A DNA stretch of 64,000 bases from Octopus sinensis (taxonomy: Eukaryota). The notes under the pieces were generated by a model. The model searched no databases and was not told the DNA's origin. It worked only from the letters and a program-made list of their open reading frames with translations. A program made the position numbers and the translations under genes. How positions within the stretch are numbered: position 1 is the first letter of the stretch; every line of letters begins with the position of its first letter. The stretch spans positions 27,218,001 through 27,282,000 of the forward strand of contig NC_043012.1 in assembly GCF_006345805.1 (NCBI RefSeq), given 5' to 3'. Of the stretch, positions 2,396 to 20,060 are shown piece after piece.

Positions 2396-4828
2396 AACAT
2401 CCGTGGTCCGTGCTGGCATGGGTTGGACAGTTTGACTGGACTGATACGCTAGAAGGCTGCGCCAGGATCCAGTCTGAGTTGGTATGGTTTTCTATGGCTG
2501 GATGCCCTTCCTAACGCTAACCACTCCTAGAGTGTAATGGGTGCTTTTATGTGCGACCAGCACAGGTGCCATTTGCGTGACACTGGTATCTGCCACAACC
2601 ATGATTTTGCTTGGCTTGATAGATCTTCTCTCAAGCACGACATAATGCTAAAGGTTTTGGTCATTGCCTCCATGAGGTCCAACACTTGAAAGGAGTCAGC
2701 CACCTCACCTCCATGAGGCCCAAAACTCAAAGGGAACTCAGCCACTTTGCCTCCATGAGGTCCAACACTCGAAAGGAACTCAGTCACTTTGCCTCCATCA
2801 GACCCAATGCTCAAAAGGTATTCAGCCATTTTGCCTCCATGAAGCCCGACATTCAAAGGTTGATTTGCATTTTACGTGCCACCAGCACATGTGCACTTGG
2901 CATGACAGGTCCACTTAAGCAGAGCACATCGCCAAAGGTCTCGGTCACTAGGCATTGCCTCTGTGAGGTTCAAAGTTCGAAGGTCATGCTTCACTGCCTC
3001 ATCCAATGTCTTCTTGGGTCTACCACTATTACAGATCCCCTCCGCAGTTAGAGATTGGCACTTCTTTACACAACTGTCCTTGTCCATATGCATCACATGA
3101 CTATACCAGTGCAGTAATCTCTCTTCCACACCACATCTGATTCTTCTTATGCCAAACTTTTCTCTCAAGATGCTTACACTCTGTCAAACATGCACACTGC
3201 CATTGCACATCCAGTGAAGCATACTGGCTTCATTTCTCTCAAGCCTACATATGTCCTCGGGATCTGTGATTTGTCTGCCTTCCTACTTACTATGACTTCA
3301 GTTTTTGCTAGGTTAACTCTAAGGCCGTTTGATTCTAGACCTTGTTTCCATACCTGGAACTTCTCTAACTATAAGAGCAAGGTCATCAACATAGAGGAGC
3401 TCCTAGGGGCAGCCTGTCTTGAATTCCTCAGTTATTCCCAGGTGGACTATGATAAAAAAGAGGGGACTGAGCATCGATCCTTGGTGAACCCCTACTTGTA
3501 ACCTGAATTCTTCGCTGTACTTGTTGCCAACCCTCACCTTACAGGTAGTAGCTTGTACAACTCTCATCAACCACTCGTCTATCCTAGTTTCCTCATTGAC
3601 CACCAGATAACAGATTGAGGTCTCTCAAAAGCTTCCTCCAAGTCATCAAAAGCTAAGTACAGAGGTTTATCTTTGGCTAGGTATTTCTCCTGAAGTTGCC
3701 TTACCAGAAATATAGCATCAGTGGTGCTTCTCCTTGGCACAAAACCAAACTGCATCTCATCTAGACTAATTCTCCCACTAATTGGTTGGGCTATGACTCT
3801 CTCCATAACCCACATCACCTGACCCAACAATTTGATACCTCTGTAATTATTTCTATCTAAGGTATCACCTTTACCTTTGCAGCAGCTGACTATGGTGGTA
3901 CTACACCAGTCATTGGGTATGACTCCTTCACGACCCACCTGATTTACAATATGGGTGACAAGACAACCTACACTGCCAGATATTTTAAGCAACTCAGCAA
4001 TGATTCCTGATGGGCCAGGGGCTTTCCCTGCCTTCATATCCTTAATTGCTTTATCTACCAAGGCACTGTCAAGTCAGATAGCTGATCCCTCAGTTGGGTC
4101 AACATTTGGCAGACTCTCCTCCTCCCATTCATTCTCCACATTCAGCAGTCTTTCATAATGGCATCTCCAAGCCTCTTTCTTTGCAGATTCATTAAAAGCA
4201 AGTGCACCATCATCCATGCAGACACATTTCTCTCCTATGACATCACAATTTTCTCTCATACACTATCTTGCAATCTGAATAGAGGCAAACTTCTTTTGTG
4301 TTTCTCCCTTGGCCCTGAATATAAGCAAACATCGTTTCTGCTTCTCCCTTGGCTAGATATACTTGTCCCCTAGCTTCCCTTCTGGCTATCTGATTCAGTT
4401 CCCTGCTGCTCCGACTCTTCCAGGCCTGTTTCTTTGTTCTAATGGTCCTATCTACGGTATTGTTCCACCACCACATTACCCTGGGTCTGGAAGGGACTTT
4501 GCACCAGTCACTTATTTGGTCTGTGGTACTCAGCAAGCTGTCTCACAGGAATTACCAGTTGCCCTCTGTGTCACAAGTTTGTAGTTCTTCCTCCTTCTCA
4601 TCAAATTTCTCAATTAGAATGTCTCTAAATCTCTAACCATATGAAGGGTTCTTAAGCTTTCAGATCCTTCTTTTCCAGATTGGTTTGCTTCTTGGCATTG
4701 TTCTGGCCTGAAGTCTAAAGTCATTAACAACTAGTCTATGTTATGGGGTACATTCTTCACCAGGGAGAGTCTTTGCATTTAAGAGCAACCATGCATCCTG
4801 CTATCTGGTGAGAATGAAATCTATCTGG

Positions 4829-5668: not shown

Positions 5669-5894
5669 TTCCAGAAGATTTTATACCTTGCCTGTGAAGA
5701 ACCTGGCTGAAGCTCCTCTCCACCTAACCTCTTGGATGCAACATACATCAACATGCCTCCTTTCAAGCATCTCAACAATCTCGTTAGATCTACATTTCAG
5801 TGTGCCTACTCTGAAAACTGGGAGGGAACACGGGAAGGAGAGATGTTATTCAGCACCTGAAAAGAAAGTTCTAATATTTTAATGTTAAATAAGG

Positions 5895-6110
5895 TAGCTA
5901 ATTGGCAGAATCATTAGCATACTGTACAAAATGCTTAGCAGTATTTCATCTGTCTTTATGTTCTGAGTTCAAATTCTACTGAGGTTGACTATGCCTTTCA
6001 TCCTTTTGGTGTTGATAAATTAAGTATCAGTTGGACACCGAGGTCAATGTAATCAATTTAACCCCTCCCCTGAAATTGCTGGCCTTGTACTAAAATTTGA
6101 AGCCAATATT
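5895..6110 (+). mobile_element. Older copy of the same SINE family
   Basis: ggcagaatcattagca ... ctgagttcaaattc ... tgcctttcatccttttggtgttgataaattaagt. Confidence 0.75.
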
Positions 6111-7220
6111 TTAAAGTTAAATAGAATGCTTAATATGCCAGTGTATGATTTGTGTTTAACTCTTTAAGTTCAATACCATAGATATCTGCATTTGGCACCA
6201 AATTTTAAACTGTACAAAACCACAGTTCAAATAGTGTTGTTGTTTAGGGATCAAAAACTGGAACTAAGCACTTTTCTGTGTGAAAAACAAAGTTTAGCTT
6301 CATTTTAGAGAACCTTCCAGTCAAAAGACTTCCAGTTTGCACCACATGCATTTATTTGTTTTATCAAGTAGATTTCTCTGAATTTGCTTTTCCTTTAATT
6401 TTCATGTGTAATGGCAGTGAGTTTGAAATTGGTAATATTATTTATTATGATCTATTTCTTCATTATCTCATTAGAAAAATGGAACCCAGGAATTAATATC
6501 TTTGCAAAATATATATGGAAACACTTCTGTGAAATCAACTTTACTGTATTCAATCTACCTTGGTAAGTGAAAAGACATGATACAACAGATAAAACAATAT
6601 TCACATGGTAAATCAGTAATCATTATATTGTATCAGAAAATTTCATCCAAACTCATGCAATGGTTATATCTTTGTTACTTTTAGAGCAAGCCAACTTCAT
6701 TTCATCAAAGTCTCTAGTTTCTAACAGGATTGAGAAACTTTTATAGCGAAAGCACCATAAGAGATTGAAAACTAATAGAGCAAGCATATATTTTGTAAAA
6801 TAGTCCTAAGCTGTGGACAGAGTTGATTATTAAAATGTTTAAATGGAACAACAGTGGTACCTACCAAAGTAAGACATATTTCAGATATAATCTTTTGATT
6901 CATGTATATTTAATAAAATATGAAAAATTTAGCAGGAGAAACAAAGATATAGAAATGTTTAGCAAAGCATTAAAAGTGCTAACATACCAGTTATGTTTAG
7001 TAGAACAGAGTTTCAGTGAAAATATAAAGGAAAAGAGAAAAAATGTGATAAAATCATATGATGCAAAATTTCTAAGTTTGAGGTACATACTCACATTAAG
7101 ATTGGTATCATTATTGGAGAAATCAACATATGATTTAAAACCCTGTAAACAACAGCAAGAAAATACATATATAAAAAAATAAATAAATACTTCAGAACAG
7201 GATTCACTTTAATGTTGTTA

Positions 7221-7239
<19 letters not shown>

Positions 7240-7260
<21 letters not shown>

Positions 7261-8165
7261 GAAGGTGGTGAGCTAACAGAATCGTTAGCATTCTGGACAA
7301 AATGCTTAGTGGTATTTTGCCCGTCACTACGTTCTGAATTCAAATTCTGCCAAGGTTGACCTTGTCTTTCTTCCTTTTGGGATTGATAAAATAAGTACCA
7401 GTGAAACACTGAGGTTGATGTAATCGACTAGTCCCCTCTCCCTAATTTCAGGCCTAGTGCCTATAGTAGAAAGGATTATTATTATTATGGCTAAGGTAGC
7501 AAGCTGGCAGAATCATTAGCGCACTGGGTGAAATGCTTAGCTGTATTTCGCCCATTGCTATGTTCTGAGTTCAAATTCCGCTGAGGTCAACTTTGCCTTT
7601 CATCCTTTCAGGATCAATTAAATAAGTACCAGTTACACACTGGAGTTGATGAAATCGACTTAATCCCCCTAACCTCAAGCTGCCCTTGAGGCAAAAATTT
7701 AAAATCATCATTATTATTATGGCTAAGGTGATGAGCTGGCAGAATCATTAGCATGCCAGACAAAATACTTAGCTTGGCAGAACTGATAGCACACCGGGCG
7801 AAATGCTCAGCGGTATTTCGTCTCTTGTTACATTCTGAGTTCAAATTCCGCCGAGGTCGACTTTGCCTTTCATCCTTTCGGGGTCGATTAAATAAGTACC
7901 AGTTATGCACTGGGGTCGATATAATCGACTTAATCCGTTTGTCTGTCCTTGTTTGTCCCCTTGTGGGTAATAAAGAAATAAGTATTTCATCTGTCTTTAG
8001 ATTTTGAGTTCAAATTCTGCTGAGTTCGACTTTTCCTTTCATCCTTTCGGGGTTGATGTTATAGGCACCAGCTGAGAACTGGGATTGAAATAATTGATGA
8101 GATCCCTCCCCTAAAAAATTTCAGGTCTTGTGCCTATAACAGAAAGAATTATTAAAATGGCTCTT
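7240..8165 (+). mobile_element. Tandem and nested cluster of 5-6 copies of the Nin-like SINE
   Basis: Repeated head gctggcagaatc(g/a)ttagc near 7271, 7502 and 7736; young nested copy about 7772-7980; (ATT)n tails between copies. Confidence 0.85.
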
Positions 8166-8265
8166 NNNNNNNNNNNNNNNNNNNNNNNNNNNNNNNNNNN
8201 NNNNNNNNNNNNNNNNNNNNNNNNNNNNNNNNNNNNNNNNNNNNNNNNNNNNNNNNNNNNNNNNN
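8166..8265. other. Assembly gap (100 N)
   Basis: Run of N. Confidence 1.
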
Positions 8266-9509
8266 ATATACATATATATATACATATATATATACATATA
8301 TATATACATATATATATAAATATATATACATACATATACATACATATACATACATATATATACATATATATAACAGTACATTATATATACTATATATATA
8401 TACATATATTATTACAGTATCTATATATAATATATATATATACATATGATTTATACATATATATATATACATATCTATATAGACATATATATAATACATA
8501 TATATATATACATATATATATATACATTATATATTATACATATATATATATACATATATTATATATACATAATATATACATTATATTATATTTATACATA
8601 TATATATATACATATATATCTATACATATATATATTACATATATATATATACATATATATATATACCATATAATATAATATATATATAATAACCATATAG
8701 ATTATATATATATATACATATATATATATACATATATATATACATATATATATATACATATATATATATACAATATATATATACAGATATATATATCTAC
8801 ATATATATATATAACATATATATAGATTATACATATATATAGATATACAATATATATTACATATATACATATACAATATAATATCCATATATATATATAC
8901 ATATATACATAAACATATATACATATACATATATACATATATATATATACATATATATATACTACATATATATATACACATATATATACACATATATATC
9001 ACATATATATATACACATATATATATACACAATATATATATACAACATATATATATACAATATATATATACATAATATATTATACATAATATATATACAT
9101 ATATATATAACATATTATATATATATATACAACATACATATATACATACATATATACATCATTACATATATATATATACATATATATATATACATATATA
9201 TATATACATATATATATATAACATATATATATATACAATATATATATAGACTATATAATAACATATAATTATAATAATATATACATATATATATTCTATA
9301 TATTACATACATATAATACATACATATATATAAATATATACATAATATAAATAATATTACATATATATAAATATATACATATATATAAATATATACATAT
9401 ATACATATATACATATATATAAATATATACATATATACATATATATACATATATACACATATATACATATATATACATATATATATATACATATATATAC
9501 ATACATATA
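8266..9509. repeat. Degenerate (TA)n/(TACATA)n low-complexity tract
   Basis: Almost only TA, CA and TACA units for about 1.25 kb; the I/Y/H-rich ORFs here are artefacts. Confidence 0.97.
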
Positions 9510-9522
9510 CAGTTAAATGATC

Positions 9523-9753
9523 TCAGAACATTTCTTTGTGATTCAAAGGTTTTTGGAGGGGGAGTGATCGAGTTGTTGAAGTTAAAGCTTGTGATATAAC
9601 AACTAACTGTTGGTTTAAACATTCGCTGCGTTCAAATGCAATCTCTTCGTTACCATGTGTGTTGTTTACCCCATCACGCACACTTTTTAAAAGAAATTTC
9701 TTCCAGTTCCTGTTTTTCAACAGAGCTTGCGATCTTGTCATCCTGTCTCCCGC
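9523..9753 (-). CDS. Candidate second coding exon of an unrecognised gene ([28 protein letters not shown]...)
   Basis: Strong acceptor (long T run + AG at 9755-9754); open in phase 0, matching the donor at 11370; runs to a stop at 9523 but may end earlier at internal GT donors; no homology recognised. Confidence 0.35.
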
Positions 9754-12689: not shown

Positions 12690-12968
12690 CTTGACCGTGA
12701 CGAAAAATTATCCCAGTACTGTTCTGACCTTGTCTACAAAATTCATATTTTTGCTGTTCAAATGATTTTGAAGACTGCAGAATAAATGATAATCAGATGG
12801 AGCAATGTATGGTGATTATGGTGGGTGAGGCATCGTTTCCCATTCAAACTACTGTGGCCAAGCATTATCCTGATGGAAGAACAACTTTCATCTTGGAAGC
12901 AAAGACGGTCATTTTTCTTCCAGTACTGCTAACAGTAGATCTCCTTTGTTATCGTTTGGGTTTAAAAG
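12690..12968 (-). mobile_element. Mariner transposase fragment interrupted by the LTR element
   Basis: Colinear with the mariner at 59740-59990 up to tttgggtttaaaag, where the LTR begins. Confidence 0.7.
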
Positions 12969-13238
12969 TGTAGTGTGAAGAAGACACCAGAAAAAGAAGC
13001 AAACGGGAGAAAGAAATACAAAGACCTTACCTCTTGACCTAGGCGGAATGAGCGATCACTGTCAAGAAATAAACACATCCTTGCACGCTGCCGTCTCTGC
13101 TCAAATTGCCCACACGTGCTTCCTGCCCACGCATGCACCGTGGCTGTTCCATCGGCCCCTGCAGTCTTCACTTCCATCTACCTCATCTGCAATCTCTCCA
13201 CCAACACCACATAGCTCATCATAGTCCATAACACCACA
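12969..13238 (-). repeat. 3' LTR (270 bp, TG...CA)
   Basis: Minus strand begins TGTGGTG and ends CTACA; aligns to 16837-17064. Confidence 0.88.
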
Positions 13239-13252
13239 CGCCCCCCCCCCCC
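13239..13252 (-). other. Polypurine tract
   Basis: G12-CG on minus immediately 5' of the 3' LTR. Confidence 0.85.
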
Positions 13253-13356
13253 GATCTACAGATCATTCAACCCGCTTCCCACTCACTCCTCGCTCCCGAA
13301 CTCACACCTTAACTGGTTTCATAATCGGCCAACCAGGGAGGAGGGTGCCACTCCCT

Positions 13357-14265
13357 CTAGTCGCTGTGCAATCCCGGGACTGGCATGCTGCTGCTGGCTT
13401 CATCATCTTTCCTACTGTTGCTGTCTTCATCTTCTTGCTCACTGCTGCTGATTTTATCCTCTGAGGCATTGACAATCTTCTGCACATCCAAAACGTGGCA
13501 TGGCATACCTTCGACATAGACATCGTTCTTCGAATTGATGAAGGTTATTGTTCCCTTTCCCCATCGTGATGTACACCGTGCATTTGGGGGTTTTACCCAA
13601 ACTTCTACCCCAACCTGCATGAAGGCATGCTCTTCCTCTACCCCAGGTTGCATTGATGCAGTACACGGATGCCTCCACTCATACCTGAATATTGCCGTGT
13701 GGCACCGACTCTTCAGCCTGTCCTGACCTGGGTGACATATTGTACCAAAATATAGTCTCGATTGGTGAAATGTGGCCCCTCTCTGCCATGGTCTTGATGG
13801 TACTATGATGCCTTTCCACCACCCCATTTCCACTTGGCCAGTATGCCGCCCTGAAGAAACAGTTGACCTGCCACCCATCAAGCATTTCTTTCAGCACCTC
13901 TGAGTGAAATGCAGTGCCATTATCCAGAAACAGTTCATCCACGGGGCTTCGTTCCAGGAATATCTCATTCAATACTTTCACTATTTCCACTGCGGTCCCC
14001 GTCTTCAACTCCCTCCATATGGCCAACAGCCCTGGTCCGCAGTCATTGAGAGGTATGTTCCCTGCCGGTAGTGTGTTATGTCCACTGCCACTTGTTTCCA
14101 ATCGTGGTCCACTGGAATACTTCCCGCCTCATGTACACTCGGAGCAGGGTCGATGGACTGGCACCTGTCACAGCTGCTAACCACTCTCTGCACACTCCAT
14201 CTTGTTACATCAGTGTCAACTTTTCTGGCTAGGAACAACATCCTGTCCACCCCCATGTGATGCAT
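13357..14265 (-). pseudogene. Gypsy integrase remnant (frameshifted)
   Basis: HHMG...CDRC zinc finger; VDITHY; LFLDNGTAF; SGNGVVERHHSTIK (DDE core). Confidence 0.88.
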
Positions 14266-16188
14266 GAATATGCAATCTTCTCAACTCCAAGTCACTCAAA
14301 CAGCATACTGCAGCTGCATCCTGCTCCGCATCCTCTGGCACCTGCAACCAGGCTCGCTTTACCCTGGTCAGGACGTCTGCCCTGTTATTCTTGGAAGGCA
14401 CAAAGATCATGCTCAGCTTCAGATCGAATTCAGCGGTTAGTTCATGCAGTATCCCCAATCAACGCTTTACCAACATCTCTACGGCCCCTTTGGTTCACAC
14501 CCTCTGCTCATTGGTGATGACTGCTGTCACCCAACCAAGTACAGTGGCTGAATCGGTTCTGATTTCTATGGTGCACAGTCCCCACTTCAATGCTAGGTTC
14601 ACTCCCTTCAACACGGCATCCAACTCCGCTACATTGATATGATTGCAGTCATCCATTTTCCTGAGCCAGGCTGCATCTTACACCACGACGCCTCCAACTT
14701 TCAAGACAACTCCTATTGCGATGCTACTGGCATCACACCATACAATCCTGCTCTTTGATTTGGGAACATACCAACTGCCCCTCACTGAATCCTCTGCTCT
14801 CACTCTGATCAAGACTTCCTGTATCATGCCGGTCGTCTTCTCCCCCACTCAATCGTTCCACTTTGGTTCATCTCTTGATGAAGTTACATGCTGTCTGGAG
14901 CCATCCTGCAATTGGGTAGTGTCCCACCAGCTTCCCACACACCGAGAAAAGTTCCCATCTACTTGTGTTGCTGCCCAGTTCGGGGATCTCGTTCCCTCAC
15001 CAGAACACCAATGCGCCGGCCTTGTCTCTCCATAGCTTGAGGCCCAGTTCAGCGCCTCCCTCCATTGCCTCTGGTGGCTTGGCGATCAGTCCCAAACTCT
15101 TCAGGTGGCCTATGATCTCTGTTGCTGGAATTACGATTTCATCCACCAGAATGTCATCAATGTACGAATTGGTGGCCCTTTTTACTCTGTCCACCTTTCC
15201 CAGGATGGCCTTGAGAATTGTTGCCATAATCTTTGGCGCTGAATTTAGCCTGAACCCCAACCTGGTCAGACAGTATGTCCAGCTCTTATACCTGACAAGC
15301 TGATACGTCCAATCTCTCAGCCACATGCACCTGCAGGTATGCTGACTTCAAATTGACGATCATGGAGGCCCCTTTCATCTGCCTCCACTCTTGCAAGGTG
15401 TCCCCACAGACATCTGTGGCCTCGCTACCCGTATGACAATATACGTGGTCATTCAGCTCTCGGAAGTCAAGCACTGGCCTGACCTTATGCTTTGTGGGCT
15501 GTACCAGTGCCATCAATGGCAGGACTCCGCTCTCTACTTCTCCTTCCCAAGGGATCAATATACCCTCCTTAATCCACTGCTCCACCTCCTCCTCGAACTT
15601 ACTTCTGGCATCTCCTTTTAGAATATGCTGATAGCAGCCCACTTTATTTTCTAACATCGGGGGCTCTCCCTTCCAGTGCCACTCCACTGTCCACATCTGG
15701 CCATCGAAGTCCTGGTCTTCAATGGCGTGTGCAGTATACTTTTCACGGTTCTCACCAATGCACAGTCTCACCATACACGGTTTCCCCGCAAACCCGAATG
15801 TTACACCGGCCTCGTTGACAGTGATACCTCCTAAATGGGTGATTGCATCCATCCCCATCACCACATCAATCTCGTCCACCAAGTGGCCAACTACTGTTGC
15901 TCGCAGCGTCAGCTTTGTTCCCTGCACCACAATCTGCGCATCTGTAATGCCTTCACAGTGTACCTCTCTTCCGTCGACTGCTCTTACACTGCTTTCTCCA
16001 CTCCACATCTCTACCACTTCTGTACATCGTGACATCTTCCCCATCACCAGAATGTCGACTACAGGTAATGATGATAAACGCGCCTCTATTGATTCAAAGG
16101 GATAACTACCGGCGCAGTAGTCTCTCTTAGACTGTTTCCCTGCGGACGTTCGCTGGCTATATGCCCTGTTTCTTGACACTGGTAGCAA
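14216..16188 (-). pseudogene. Gypsy protease-RT-RNase H remnant (frameshifted)
   Basis: RPVLDFRELN, LKSAYLQV, RLGFRLNSAP, YIDDIL, NNRADVLTR. Confidence 0.88.
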
Positions 16189-16800
16189 ATGACCTCAGGC
16201 TTGGGTGACTTGGGTACCATGTGCGGGCCCTGACACCGGAAACACTGTCCCTTGAATGGTTGCACACGTTCCTTGTTTGACCCCTCTCTGCTACTCCTTG
16301 CTTGGCCACTTTTCGTTGTTGCAGTCACTGCTACCAGCATCGTCCTAGCATGCAAGCCTGAGATACAATGTCTGCCATCGCCATAGAGTTAATGTTTGGT
16401 AGCTTTTGCAACTCGACCGACATGTGGTCAGGAAGGCCAGTCACAAACGCTAACTTAACCATTCAGTCTAGTGATTCTCCCTCATATCCCGCCAGTTTAG
16501 CCAATCTTCTGAGATTGTTCGCAAATACATCAACCTGTTCGCCAGTCCACTTTGCTTTCCCTCTGCAAAGGTCTCCATCAAACGGATTTCTATTTTTTCT
16601 GCACTAAGTTGGTCCCTCTCTTCCATTTCTAGCTACAGCGCCAACGCCGAACCATCTAGGTACAGCGGTATAAAGCTCGCTAAGTCGCTTATACCGTGGA
16701 GCGTCGCAACCAACTTCATCTTCTTCAACCAAGCGACTACATCAGTGTCACCACAAAATGGTTTGACCATATTGTTCGAAATACGGACTACACTCATCAT
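16086..16800 (-). pseudogene. Gypsy gag remnant with two zinc knuckles
   Basis: ATG at 16800 (MMSVVRISNNMVKPFCGDTDVVAWLKK...); CFRCQGPH and CYQCQETGH motifs; internal stops. Confidence 0.85.
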
Positions 16801-16824: not shown

Positions 16825-16836
16825 GCCGAAATAGCT
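16825..16836 (-). other. Putative atypical primer-binding site complementary to tRNA-Phe nt 1-12
   Basis: Element strand reads LTR-CA|AGCTATTTCGGC; its complement GCCGAAATAGCT equals the 5' end of metazoan tRNA-Phe(GAA) as recalled. Confidence 0.65.
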
Positions 16837-17064
16837 TGTAGTGTGATGGAGGAAGAAGGCAACAGAAAAAGAAGTAAAAGTGAGAAAGAAATACAAAGAC
16901 CTTACCTCTTGACCTAGGCGGAATGAGCGATCACTGTCAAGAAATAACCACGTCCTTGCATGCTGCCGTCTCTGCTCGAACTGCCCGCATGTGCTTCCTG
17001 CCCATGCATGCCCCATGGCTGTTCCACCAGACCCTGCAGTCTTCACTTCCATCTACCTCATCTG
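16837..17064 (-). repeat. 5' LTR, outer part missing (about 40 bp)
   Basis: Homology to the 3' LTR stops at ctacctcatctg, then mariner sequence follows. Confidence 0.85.
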
Positions 17065-17556
17065 TATGAAAATGATGTGCAAAAAACATCCTGGAGCTTG
17101 TGTAAGGATCCCCCAAAACAGCAATTAAAGACAAATATCCATGCTAAAAAAGCTATGCTTTGTGTTTGGTGAGATCATAAAGGCATTATTTACTATGAGC
17201 TTCTTCCACAAAACCAGACCATTAATTCTGATGTGCACTGTTTTCAGCTGGCTAATTTGAACCAAAAATCAAAGAATTGAGGCCAGAGATTGCCAAAAGA
17301 AAGGAGTTTTGTTCCAACTAGACAATGCCTGTTTGATTACCTGAACAAAGTTTCATGAACTTGGCTGGGATCTCTTACCCGATCCACCATATTCTTCTGA
17401 TATTGCACCAGCTGACTACCTCTTGTTTTTGTCTCTACAGAACTCATTGCAAAGAAAAACATTTAACAATTTAGATGGAGTCAAAATGCATCTAGATAAC
17501 TTTATTTATATCCCATTTTGCATATTAATGCTCAGAACTATCCGGACAACCTAATA
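17065..17556 (+). mobile_element. Mariner 3' half with right TIR
   Basis: KKAMLCVW, YYELLP, PPYSSDIAPADYLLF remnants; TIR gaactatccggacaacctaata next to (TA)n. Confidence 0.85.
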
Positions 17557-17626: not shown

Positions 17627-17639
17627 GTATATAACACAC

Positions 17640-17940
17640 ATCATCATCATCATCATCATCATTTAACGTCCGCTTTCCATGCTAGCATGGGTTGGACGGT
17701 TCAACTGGGGTCTGGCAAGCCCGAAGGCTGCACCAGGCCAGTCAGATCTGGCAGTGTTTCTACAGCTGGATGCCCTTCCTAACGCCAACCACTCCGAGAG
17801 TGTAGTGGGTGATTTTATGTGCCACCGACACAGGTGCCAGACGAGGCTGGCGAACGGCCACGCTCGGATGGTGTTTTTTATGTGCCACCGACACTGGTAC
17901 CACAAAGATACAAATTCCATTGATGTTCATCTATTTTGAT
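17640..17940 (-). mobile_element. Young RTE 3'-UTR tail copy
   Basis: (cat)n tail; near identity to 60743-61230. Confidence 0.85.
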
Positions 17941-19799: not shown

Positions 19800-20060
19800 G
19801 TTGCATCATCATCATCATCATCATCATCGTTTAACATCCGTTTTCCATGCTAGCATGGGTTGGACAGTTTGACTGGGATCTGGGAAGCCATAAGGCTGCA
19901 CCAGGCTCCAGTCTGATCTGGCAGTGTTTCTACAGCTGGATGCCCTCCCTAACAGCAACCACTCCGTGAGTGTAGTGGGTGCTTTTTTCGTGCCACTGGC
20001 ACAGGTGCCAGGCGAGGCTGGCAACGGCCATGATCGGATTGGTGCTTTTTACATGCCACC
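19800..20060 (-). mobile_element. RTE 3'-UTR tail copy
   Basis: (cat)n tail and conserved ggttgctgttagggagggcatccagctgtagaaac. Confidence 0.8.

Follow-up and report, generated by a model that had tools for sequence, protein, structure and literature searches.

A conserved 12-nucleotide block complementary to the 5' end of tRNA-Phe abuts the 5' long terminal repeat in a family of invertebrate retrotransposons and is a candidate primer binding site

Analysis of a 64,000-nucleotide stretch of Octopus sinensis contig NC_043012.1 (positions 27,218,001 to 27,282,000, hereafter the window) revealed a single decayed long terminal repeat (LTR) retrotransposon of ~4.16 kb, lying on the minus strand at 17125-12969, with a 12-nt block, AGCTATTTCGGC, at 16825-16836 that we consider to be its putative minus-strand primer binding site (PBS). 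The 5' LTR (16837-17125) ends in CACACTACA at 16837 and aligns cleanly with the 3' LTR over 17066-16837, the first ~55 nt being diverged, and the 3' LTR (12969-13238) runs from TGTGG to CACACTACA. This LTR pair, found independently of the 12-mer, is ~92% identical over 213 nt, and a probable target-site duplication is seen as CTTTT at 12964-12968 vs. CTTTA at 17130-17126 (4/5 match). The LTRs exceed the cleanly aligned 213-230 bp, their outer limits having been set by a hairpin and polypurine tract (PPT) common to the family; shifting the 5' starts of the LTRs outward leaves the junction between LTR and 12-mer in place. Between the LTRs lie a gag remnant (16086-16800), with its ATG at 16800, 24 nt past the 12-mer, and interrupted by stops; remnants of protease and reverse transcriptase (RT) at 14997-16188, in open reading frame (ORF) pieces 16188-15286 and 15326-14997 with frameshifts between them; an RNase H remnant (14495-14848; pieces 14848-14678 and 14656-14495; RVT_3 4e-7, RNase_H 6e-4); and an integrase remnant (13357-14458) in frameshifted pieces 14458-14216, 14265-14005, 14101-13679 and 13881-13357, the translations of which align to an intact Argonauta pol. 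The hairpin and G-run PPT, TGATCTGTAGATC-G12-CG, at 13239-13265 sits directly 5' of the 3' LTR. The N-terminus of the window gag bears a motif, KPFCGDTDVVAWLKKMKLVA, also seen in relatives, and the gag piece at 16355-16086 has a CCHC zinc knuckle (zf-CCHC, E=1.5e-5). Homologues of the protease-RT piece reach 9e-70 and carry Asp_protease, RVT_1 and DUF7047. With its direct TG..CA LTRs and remnants of gag and pol domains, the element is an LTR retrotransposon (Ortervirales). Its ORFs are broken and the window copy is an inactive fossil, with no second copy or solo LTR of the element elsewhere in the 64-kb window.

The junction on the minus strand reads TCCATCACACTACA followed immediately by AGCTATTTCGGCCCATAAC, with the final LTR base, an A, at 16837, the 12-mer at 16836-16825 and zero spacer. 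Both LTRs end in CACACTACA, and what lies downstream of the 3' LTR is unrelated flank, CTTTTAAACC; because of this unrelated flank, the 12-mer can be placed outside the LTR and yet flush with it. On the plus strand, GCCGAAATAGCT at 16825-16836 is the sole match in the window when up to one mismatch is allowed, vs. 0.19 expected by chance. For cytoplasmic tRNA-Phe(GAA), two papers print the 5'-terminal 22-25 nt, namely a human forward primer, GCCGAAATAGCTCAGTTGGGAG (PMC10505166), and a Drosophila 5' probe, GCTCTCCCAACTGAGCTATTTCGGC (PMC7038984), and from these published 5' ends it follows that the 12-mer is a perfect complement of tRNA-Phe nt 1-12. These 12 nt cover the 5' strand of the acceptor stem, U8, A9 and the first three bases of the D-stem, and the antiparallel duplex puts tRNA nt 12 beside the last base of the unique 5' region (U5) of the LTR. 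We infer from the identity between human and fly that the host of the window probably shares this tRNA-Phe. As a proxy only, given that they are phage tRNAs, the tRNA genes in IMG/VR that start with GCCTAGATAGCTCAG were tRNA-Phe(GAA) in 11 of 11 cases. ARAGORN returned zero tRNA genes in the window, and an Rfam scan of the window matched no family. Nor does any TGG-type PBS follow the 5' LTR of the window or that of any relative examined. An earlier sequence-only reading of this DNA had described a 12-mer without spacer next to the LTR, a 12/12 match to the metazoan tRNA-Phe(GAA) sequence, nt 12 of the tRNA lying next to U5 and the lack of a TGG-type PBS; the junction proved exact, the tRNA sequence it gave agrees with the two published ends, and the geometry and the lack of a TGG-type site both hold.

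Relatives were identified in three ways. The protease-RT piece of the window led to Argonauta, Palaemon, Plakobranchus and many assemblies at 45-60% protein identity, a search with the intact Argonauta pol returned more than 790 proteins at E below 1e-10 (Aplysia, Petrolisthes and Oratosquilla among them), and one unbiased scan of Joint Genome Institute (JGI) metagenome contigs by pol alignment yielded 74 loci. Elements were found in Argonauta, Aplysia, Plakobranchus, Palaemon, Petrolisthes and Oratosquilla as well as ~30 metagenome contigs; individual loci carry L numbers below. Where the LTR pair sufficed to place the junction, the LTR is followed by AGCTATTTCGGC in two Argonauta copies (L004, LTRs 100% identical, target-site duplication CTAGT; L083, 100%, TCAGT), in Aplysia (L080, 99%, GATCA) and in a contig (L021, 96%, duplication not clear, GCTGGG / GTGGGC), and by AGCTATCTAGGC in Petrolisthes (L081, 100%, TAAAC), two Oratosquilla copies (L082, 97%, CAGAA; L085, 99%, TTTAT) and Palaemon (L005, 98%, duplication not clear). 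The 12-mer of a Plakobranchus element (L084) varies by one base, and L002 bears a CpG-decayed form, AGCTATTTTAGC, of which the sister copy L001 bears the intact 12-mer. Elements with an identical 12-mer have LTR sequences that are unrelated to one another. Among the metagenome loci with enough sequence upstream of pol, the block was present in 14 of 16, at ~950-1340 nt before the first matched pol residue, with a fifteenth (L065) carrying it after an LTR ending in TA. Conservation in more than 40 loci rules out both a fortuitous match and a peculiarity confined to the window copy.

The limits of this conservation are sharp. In 33 distinct junctions collected by regular expression, information content was at or near 2 bits for the terminal ACA of the LTR and for positions 1-6 and 10-12 of the block, lower at positions 7-9, and dropped to background (no more than ~0.2 bit) both at position 13 and in the LTR beyond -3; conservation thus ends at base 12, which is the site expected for the 5' end of the tRNA. 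The gag ATG follows at a median of 10.5 nt past the 12-mer, mostly at 0-20 nt and at 0-1 nt in 7 elements, such that the 12-mer is essentially the whole leader between LTR and gag; with the ATG so close behind, there is no room for another PBS. A misplaced LTR boundary is ruled out by the target-site duplications in young copies with LTRs 97-100% identical, matching 5-bp duplications being present in six of the relatives with an LTR pair. Two loci, L036 (1969-4404) and L049 (~3240-3470), relatives of L032 from the same sample, have recognizable LTR ends without the 12-mer and are probably degraded or rearranged copies. In the Argonauta hians element L083 (2125-6531), the LTRs end in ATCAAG instead of CA, with the 12-mer still directly next to them, and this copy apparently departs from the terminal dinucleotide rule.

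Variation in the block is confined to the complements of tRNA positions 4-7, for which we found GAAA, TAGA, GTGA, GCGA, GGGA, CGGA and one GTGT, with the tRNA-side GCC (1-3) and TAGCT (8-12) constant across all variants. Positions 4-7 are where the acceptor stems of tRNAs differ between lineages. All mollusc elements (two from Argonauta, those of Aplysia and Plakobranchus, and the window copy) have the tRNA-Phe form, GCCGAAA, and all malacostracan elements (Palaemon, Petrolisthes and two from Oratosquilla) have GCCTAGATAGCT, corresponding to GCCTAGA. The pol tree is at odds with this partition: the Aplysia element shares a clade with the decapod elements (Shimodaira-Hasegawa approximate likelihood-ratio support 95), the Oratosquilla elements fall outside that clade, and the tree of 35 elements requires the PBS state to change at least 10 times. 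Forcing monophyly of the TAGA elements cost 24 log-likelihood units (approximately unbiased [AU] test, p=0.021) and forcing that of the GCGA elements cost 153 (AU p=7e-5). Since the PBS states disagree with the pol tree, the PBS tracks something in the host, as would be the case were its sequence fitted to a host RNA or derived from one by copying. One further locus, L038, carries the complement of GCCCGGATAGCT, which may correspond to the 5' end of animal tRNA-Lys(UUU). Three further checks called for by the sequence-only reading came out in its favor among the relatives: the 12-mer is conserved flush with the LTR despite unrelated LTRs and pol proteins only 45-60% identical, the LTR boundary lies where that reading put it, as fixed at the same junction by the matching 5-bp duplications of relatives, and sister elements show the predicted covariation in that the acceptor-stem part differs and the complement of nt 8-12 is fixed.

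By comparison among relatives, then, the 12-mer emerges as the only candidate PBS, conserved and host-tracking, and the family as one that keeps exactly 12 nt 3' of U5 with predicted complementarity to nt 1-12 of a host tRNA, tRNA-Phe(GAA) in the case of molluscs. We surmise, with a probability of roughly 70%, that the 12-mer is a PBS which pairs with host tRNA nt 1-12 and that the priming 3'-OH comes from a cut after U12. The bases UUUCGGC of the PBS are the same as those of the 3' acceptor strand within the tRNA itself. For the full 12-mer a duplex energy of -18.7 kcal/mol is predicted, vs. -8.8 for the 7-bp stem part alone. We speculate that the gag nucleocapsid, through its CCHC knuckles, would help genomic RNA invade the acceptor stem, where it would replace the 3' acceptor strand and gain five extra pairs to nt 8-12. 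Given that priming needs a 3'-OH at tRNA nt 12, the tRNA would have to be severed where the RNA-RNA duplex ends, between U12 and C13, most likely by the RT/RNase H of the element by analogy with Tf1, or else the primer may be supplied as a preformed host 5' fragment. The 3'-OH of U12 would then prime minus-strand strong-stop DNA, starting with TGT..., and plus-strand strong-stop synthesis would later copy the primer and run off at tRNA nt 1. Such a run-off would account both for a PBS of exactly 12 nt and for its resetting to the host tRNA. There is precedent for both steps: in retroviruses the PBS inherits a copy of the tRNA and so tracks the host tRNA (PMC7472051), and in Tf1/Tj1 the PBS anneals to the initial 11 nt of the mRNA, after which the primer is freed when the RNase H domain cleaves this RNA duplex (PMC4600332).

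The closest alternative retains the same PBS and the same tRNA and differs in the source of the primer, which would be a preformed host 5' tRNA fragment that ends at U12 and is packaged as a short RNA. All of our sequence observations fit this scheme equally well, and reviews describe 5' tRNA fragments in many organisms; we nevertheless regard it as unlikely, in that the described 5' tRNA-derived fragment (tRF-5) classes end in the D-loop or later and are at least 14 nt long, any longer fragment would end in a 3' tail with no pairing partner given that the ACA at the LTR end cannot pair with C13-A14, and it would be difficult to pick out an RNA of just 12 nt and package it with specificity. 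Far less probable is the view that the 12-mer is a cis element with another role (packaging, dimerization, translation start context or an integrase-related end) and that its complementarity to a tRNA is incidental. A translational role is conceivable with the 12-mer adjoining the gag ATG in many elements, and nothing else positively favors this view; it has to contend with conservation that spans precisely the 12 nt from the LTR end onward, with the lack of any other candidate PBS or space for one, with variation that is limited to the positions variable among acceptor stems and is in step with the host, not with pol, and with a mollusc version that matches a documented tRNA 5' end at 12/12 positions. 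Self-priming as in Tf1, with the 5' end of the transcript folding back onto the 12-mer, is suggested by a short PBS flush with U5 (12 nt vs. 11 nt in Tf1, and likewise flush in Tf1/Tj1) and can be dismissed, as the sequence-only reading had done for the 3' LTR, because the LTRs tested (window, L002, L004 and L005) offer at best 7/12 Watson-Crick pairs to the 12-mer (9-10 with G-U) and unrelated LTRs share an identical 12-mer.

Several points weigh against priming from a tRNA cut after U12. The support for priming by a tRNA fragment is comparative. Cleavage of a tRNA so as to leave a 3'-OH in the D-stem at nt 12 is not known, and known tRF-5 species are at least 14 nt. The host tRNA-Phe gene was found neither in the window nor in the loci fetched, and the match in molluscs rests on conservation between human and fly; moreover, no tRNA has been paired with the crustacean or metagenome variants of the PBS. 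As to the statistics, the AU test of the crustacean (TAGA) group was framed post hoc, after the tree had been seen, and the set of 33 junctions was gathered by a regular expression that fixes CA+AGCTA, with the result that only positions 6-12 and the flanks were free to vary in that set; the junctions located from LTR pairs are independent of this expression. The reading makes a concrete prediction, in that mollusc tRNA-Phe(GAA) should start with GCCGAAAUAGCU and a malacostracan tRNA with GCCUAGAUAGCU.

The only tRNA gene that ARAGORN detected in the fetched loci was a tRNA-Val(CAC) at 2095-2167 of the Oratosquilla oratoria locus L082 (CM102924.1; = L111 8095-8167), ~195 bp from the 5' LTR on the opposite strand, and widening this locus to 22 kb revealed no further tRNA. 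Its position is probably due to chance and not to pol III targeting, no tRNA having been seen near other copies.

Textbook cases of priming all draw on one of three primers: the 3' end of a tRNA, a half-tRNA produced by cleavage in the anticodon loop, or the 5' end of the element itself. It is useful to set the mechanism proposed here beside each. With Tf1, Tf2 and Tj1 of the Tf1/sushi group it would share a very short PBS (11 nt there, 12 here) flush with U5, a primer that is the extreme 5' end of an RNA with its 3'-OH generated endonucleolytically where an RNA-RNA duplex ends, and plus-strand strong-stop synthesis running off the 5' end of the primer; it would differ in that their primer is the 5' end of their own mRNA, in contrast to a host tRNA 5' end without any complement in the LTR, and their pol proteins are not close relatives. 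With copia, Ty5 and other hemiviruses the common feature would be a 5'-derived piece of a host tRNA in place of the 3' CCA end. The PBSs of copia and Ty5 pair with the anticodon-stem region of initiator tRNA-Met, a cut in the anticodon loop giving a ~39-nt fragment, whereas here the match is to tRNA-Phe nt 1-12, the implied cut is in the D-stem and the domain order is protease, RT, RNase H, integrase (PR-RT-RH-IN), not that of Ty1/copia. The 12-mer contains no known complement of the anticodon arm of initiator tRNA-Met. Classical 3'-end priming (retroviruses, Ty3, Drosophila gypsy) likewise has a host tRNA anneal beside U5 and the PBS re-copied from the primer, but its PBS is ~18 nt, starts with TGG, pairs with the 3' acceptor/T-arm strand and needs no cleavage, in contrast to 12 nt without TGG at the opposite end of the tRNA.

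The family itself comprises compact gag-pol LTR retrotransposons of 4.1-4.9 kb. In the intact copies L081 (4001-7587) and L083 (2539-6155), a gag of 236-238 aa overlaps a pol of 966-999 aa in the -1 frame, an arrangement that would imply retrovirus-like -1 frameshifting. Several copies have 100% identical LTRs together with intact gag and pol, and the family is therefore currently or recently active, unlike the window copy. All gags, that of the window included, open with a ...KPF-G-GDV--WL-K--LVA motif, the LTRs run from TGT(A/G)G to ACA with 5-bp target-site duplications, and in at least 14 relatives and the window (L004, L021, L080, L081, L082 and L085 among others) a hairpin, TGATC(N2-4)GATCA, and then a G-rich PPT stand directly before the 3' LTR, which begins with TGT(A/G)G; hairpin and PPT together may form a signal for plus-strand priming that is characteristic of this family. 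Many metagenome contigs of ~3.5-5 kb (L007, L009, L011, L016, L017, L019, L022 and L025) were circularly permuted, in the order pol, single LTR, 12-mer, gag, as could arise from LTRs collapsed in assembly, from tandem copies or from one-LTR circles; their LTRs are only ~200-300 bp. Splice-donor-like (A/G)GT(A/G)AG motifs precede the LTR end by 17-90 nt, chiefly among elements of the animal subclade (L004, L005, L065, L082, L083 and L085), with AGGTAAG at ~16905-16911 on the minus strand in U5 of the window copy. If such a motif were used, spliced transcripts would lose the PBS. The idea of a conserved GGTAAG splice donor in U5 was dropped, as it occurs in only 12 of 41 junctions.

With respect to classification, the sequence-only reading had called the element gypsy. 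The domain order PR-RT-RH-IN, found in the window element and its relatives, agrees with this label; the match of the RT to RVT_1 is weak, the RNase H matches RVT_3/RNase_H with no gypsy-type RT_RNaseH hit, and the integrase is by sequence nearest to retroviral integrases (mouse mammary tumor virus and HIV, as the best PDB matches). The intact Argonauta pol has an rve domain (8e-11), with Integrase_H2C2 below cutoff. An AlphaFold model (mean predicted local distance difference test score, pLDDT, 67) gave HIV-1 p66 and foamy virus PR-RT as best fold matches, and in this model the family-specific DUF7047 covers the RT thumb, with a single RNase H fold directly after it. We had considered DUF7047 as part of a dual RNase H/tether and dropped this notion, given that the model shows thumb helices and one RNase H fold. 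The Ty3/gypsy label may thus be loosely right and is unproven. Odin retrotransposons and lokiretroviruses, two retrovirus-like lineages (PMC9040795), resemble the family in being LTR elements of marine invertebrates that have gag and pol but no env and show retrovirus-like features. Odin has been reported from sea anemones alone and possesses a dual RNase H (tether + RNase H), and the paper describing it makes no mention of a PBS or tRNA (PMC9040795). The present family has another host range and, by the model, the single RNase H fold, and its identity with Odin is not supported on these two grounds.

The remaining repeat features in the window consist of a 100-N assembly gap at 8166-8265, a long TA/TACA microsatellite field (8250-9530), a SINE (short interspersed nuclear element)-like pair at 17639-17816 and 19807-19986 that is 90-92% identical and headed in each case by (CAT)n, and a dispersed repeat in four to five copies at 5868-8116. 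Together with the best protein hits, these repeats point to a cephalopod or another mollusc as host.

A full-text literature search, the coverage of which left out most subscription journals and which is hence weak evidence, turned up no report in which a PBS is the complement of a tRNA 5' end; a paper on Arabidopsis tRF-Asp deals with ordinary 3'-end PBSs and one on Culex with a tRNA-dimer insertion. An earlier description, e.g. in older retrotransposon surveys or Repbase notes, may exist. Taken as a whole, the conserved junction and its host-tracking variants amount to strong comparative evidence for an LTR element whose priming depends on a tRNA and follows a new geometry. A broader reading, to which we assign somewhat less than even odds, is that a widespread and still-active retrovirus-like clade primes from a 12-nt 5' piece of tRNA-Phe as a fourth mode of priming, with the PBS rewritten in each host; on the same tentative footing, the clade would range over cephalopods, gastropods, decapods, stomatopods and many eukaryotes of environmental assemblies.

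Primer choice is a defining trait of reverse-transcribing elements and is used in their taxonomy. If priming proceeds as proposed, it would constitute a new initiation mechanism needing a specific cut inside the D-stem, and it would link tRNA priming mechanistically with self-priming of the Tf1 type, giving a hint as to how one evolves into the other. It would also account for the failure of standard PBS finders, which work by aligning the 3' ends of tRNAs, to report a PBS in these abundant invertebrate elements. The acceptor-stem positions of the PBS would mark the host in which an element last replicated, which may aid in tracing horizontal transfer among marine invertebrates, and rewriting of the PBS in each host could record or limit such transfer. 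One may further ask whether 5' tRNA fragments or antisense molecules restrict these elements, mirroring the control of endogenous retroviruses by 3' tRNA fragments.

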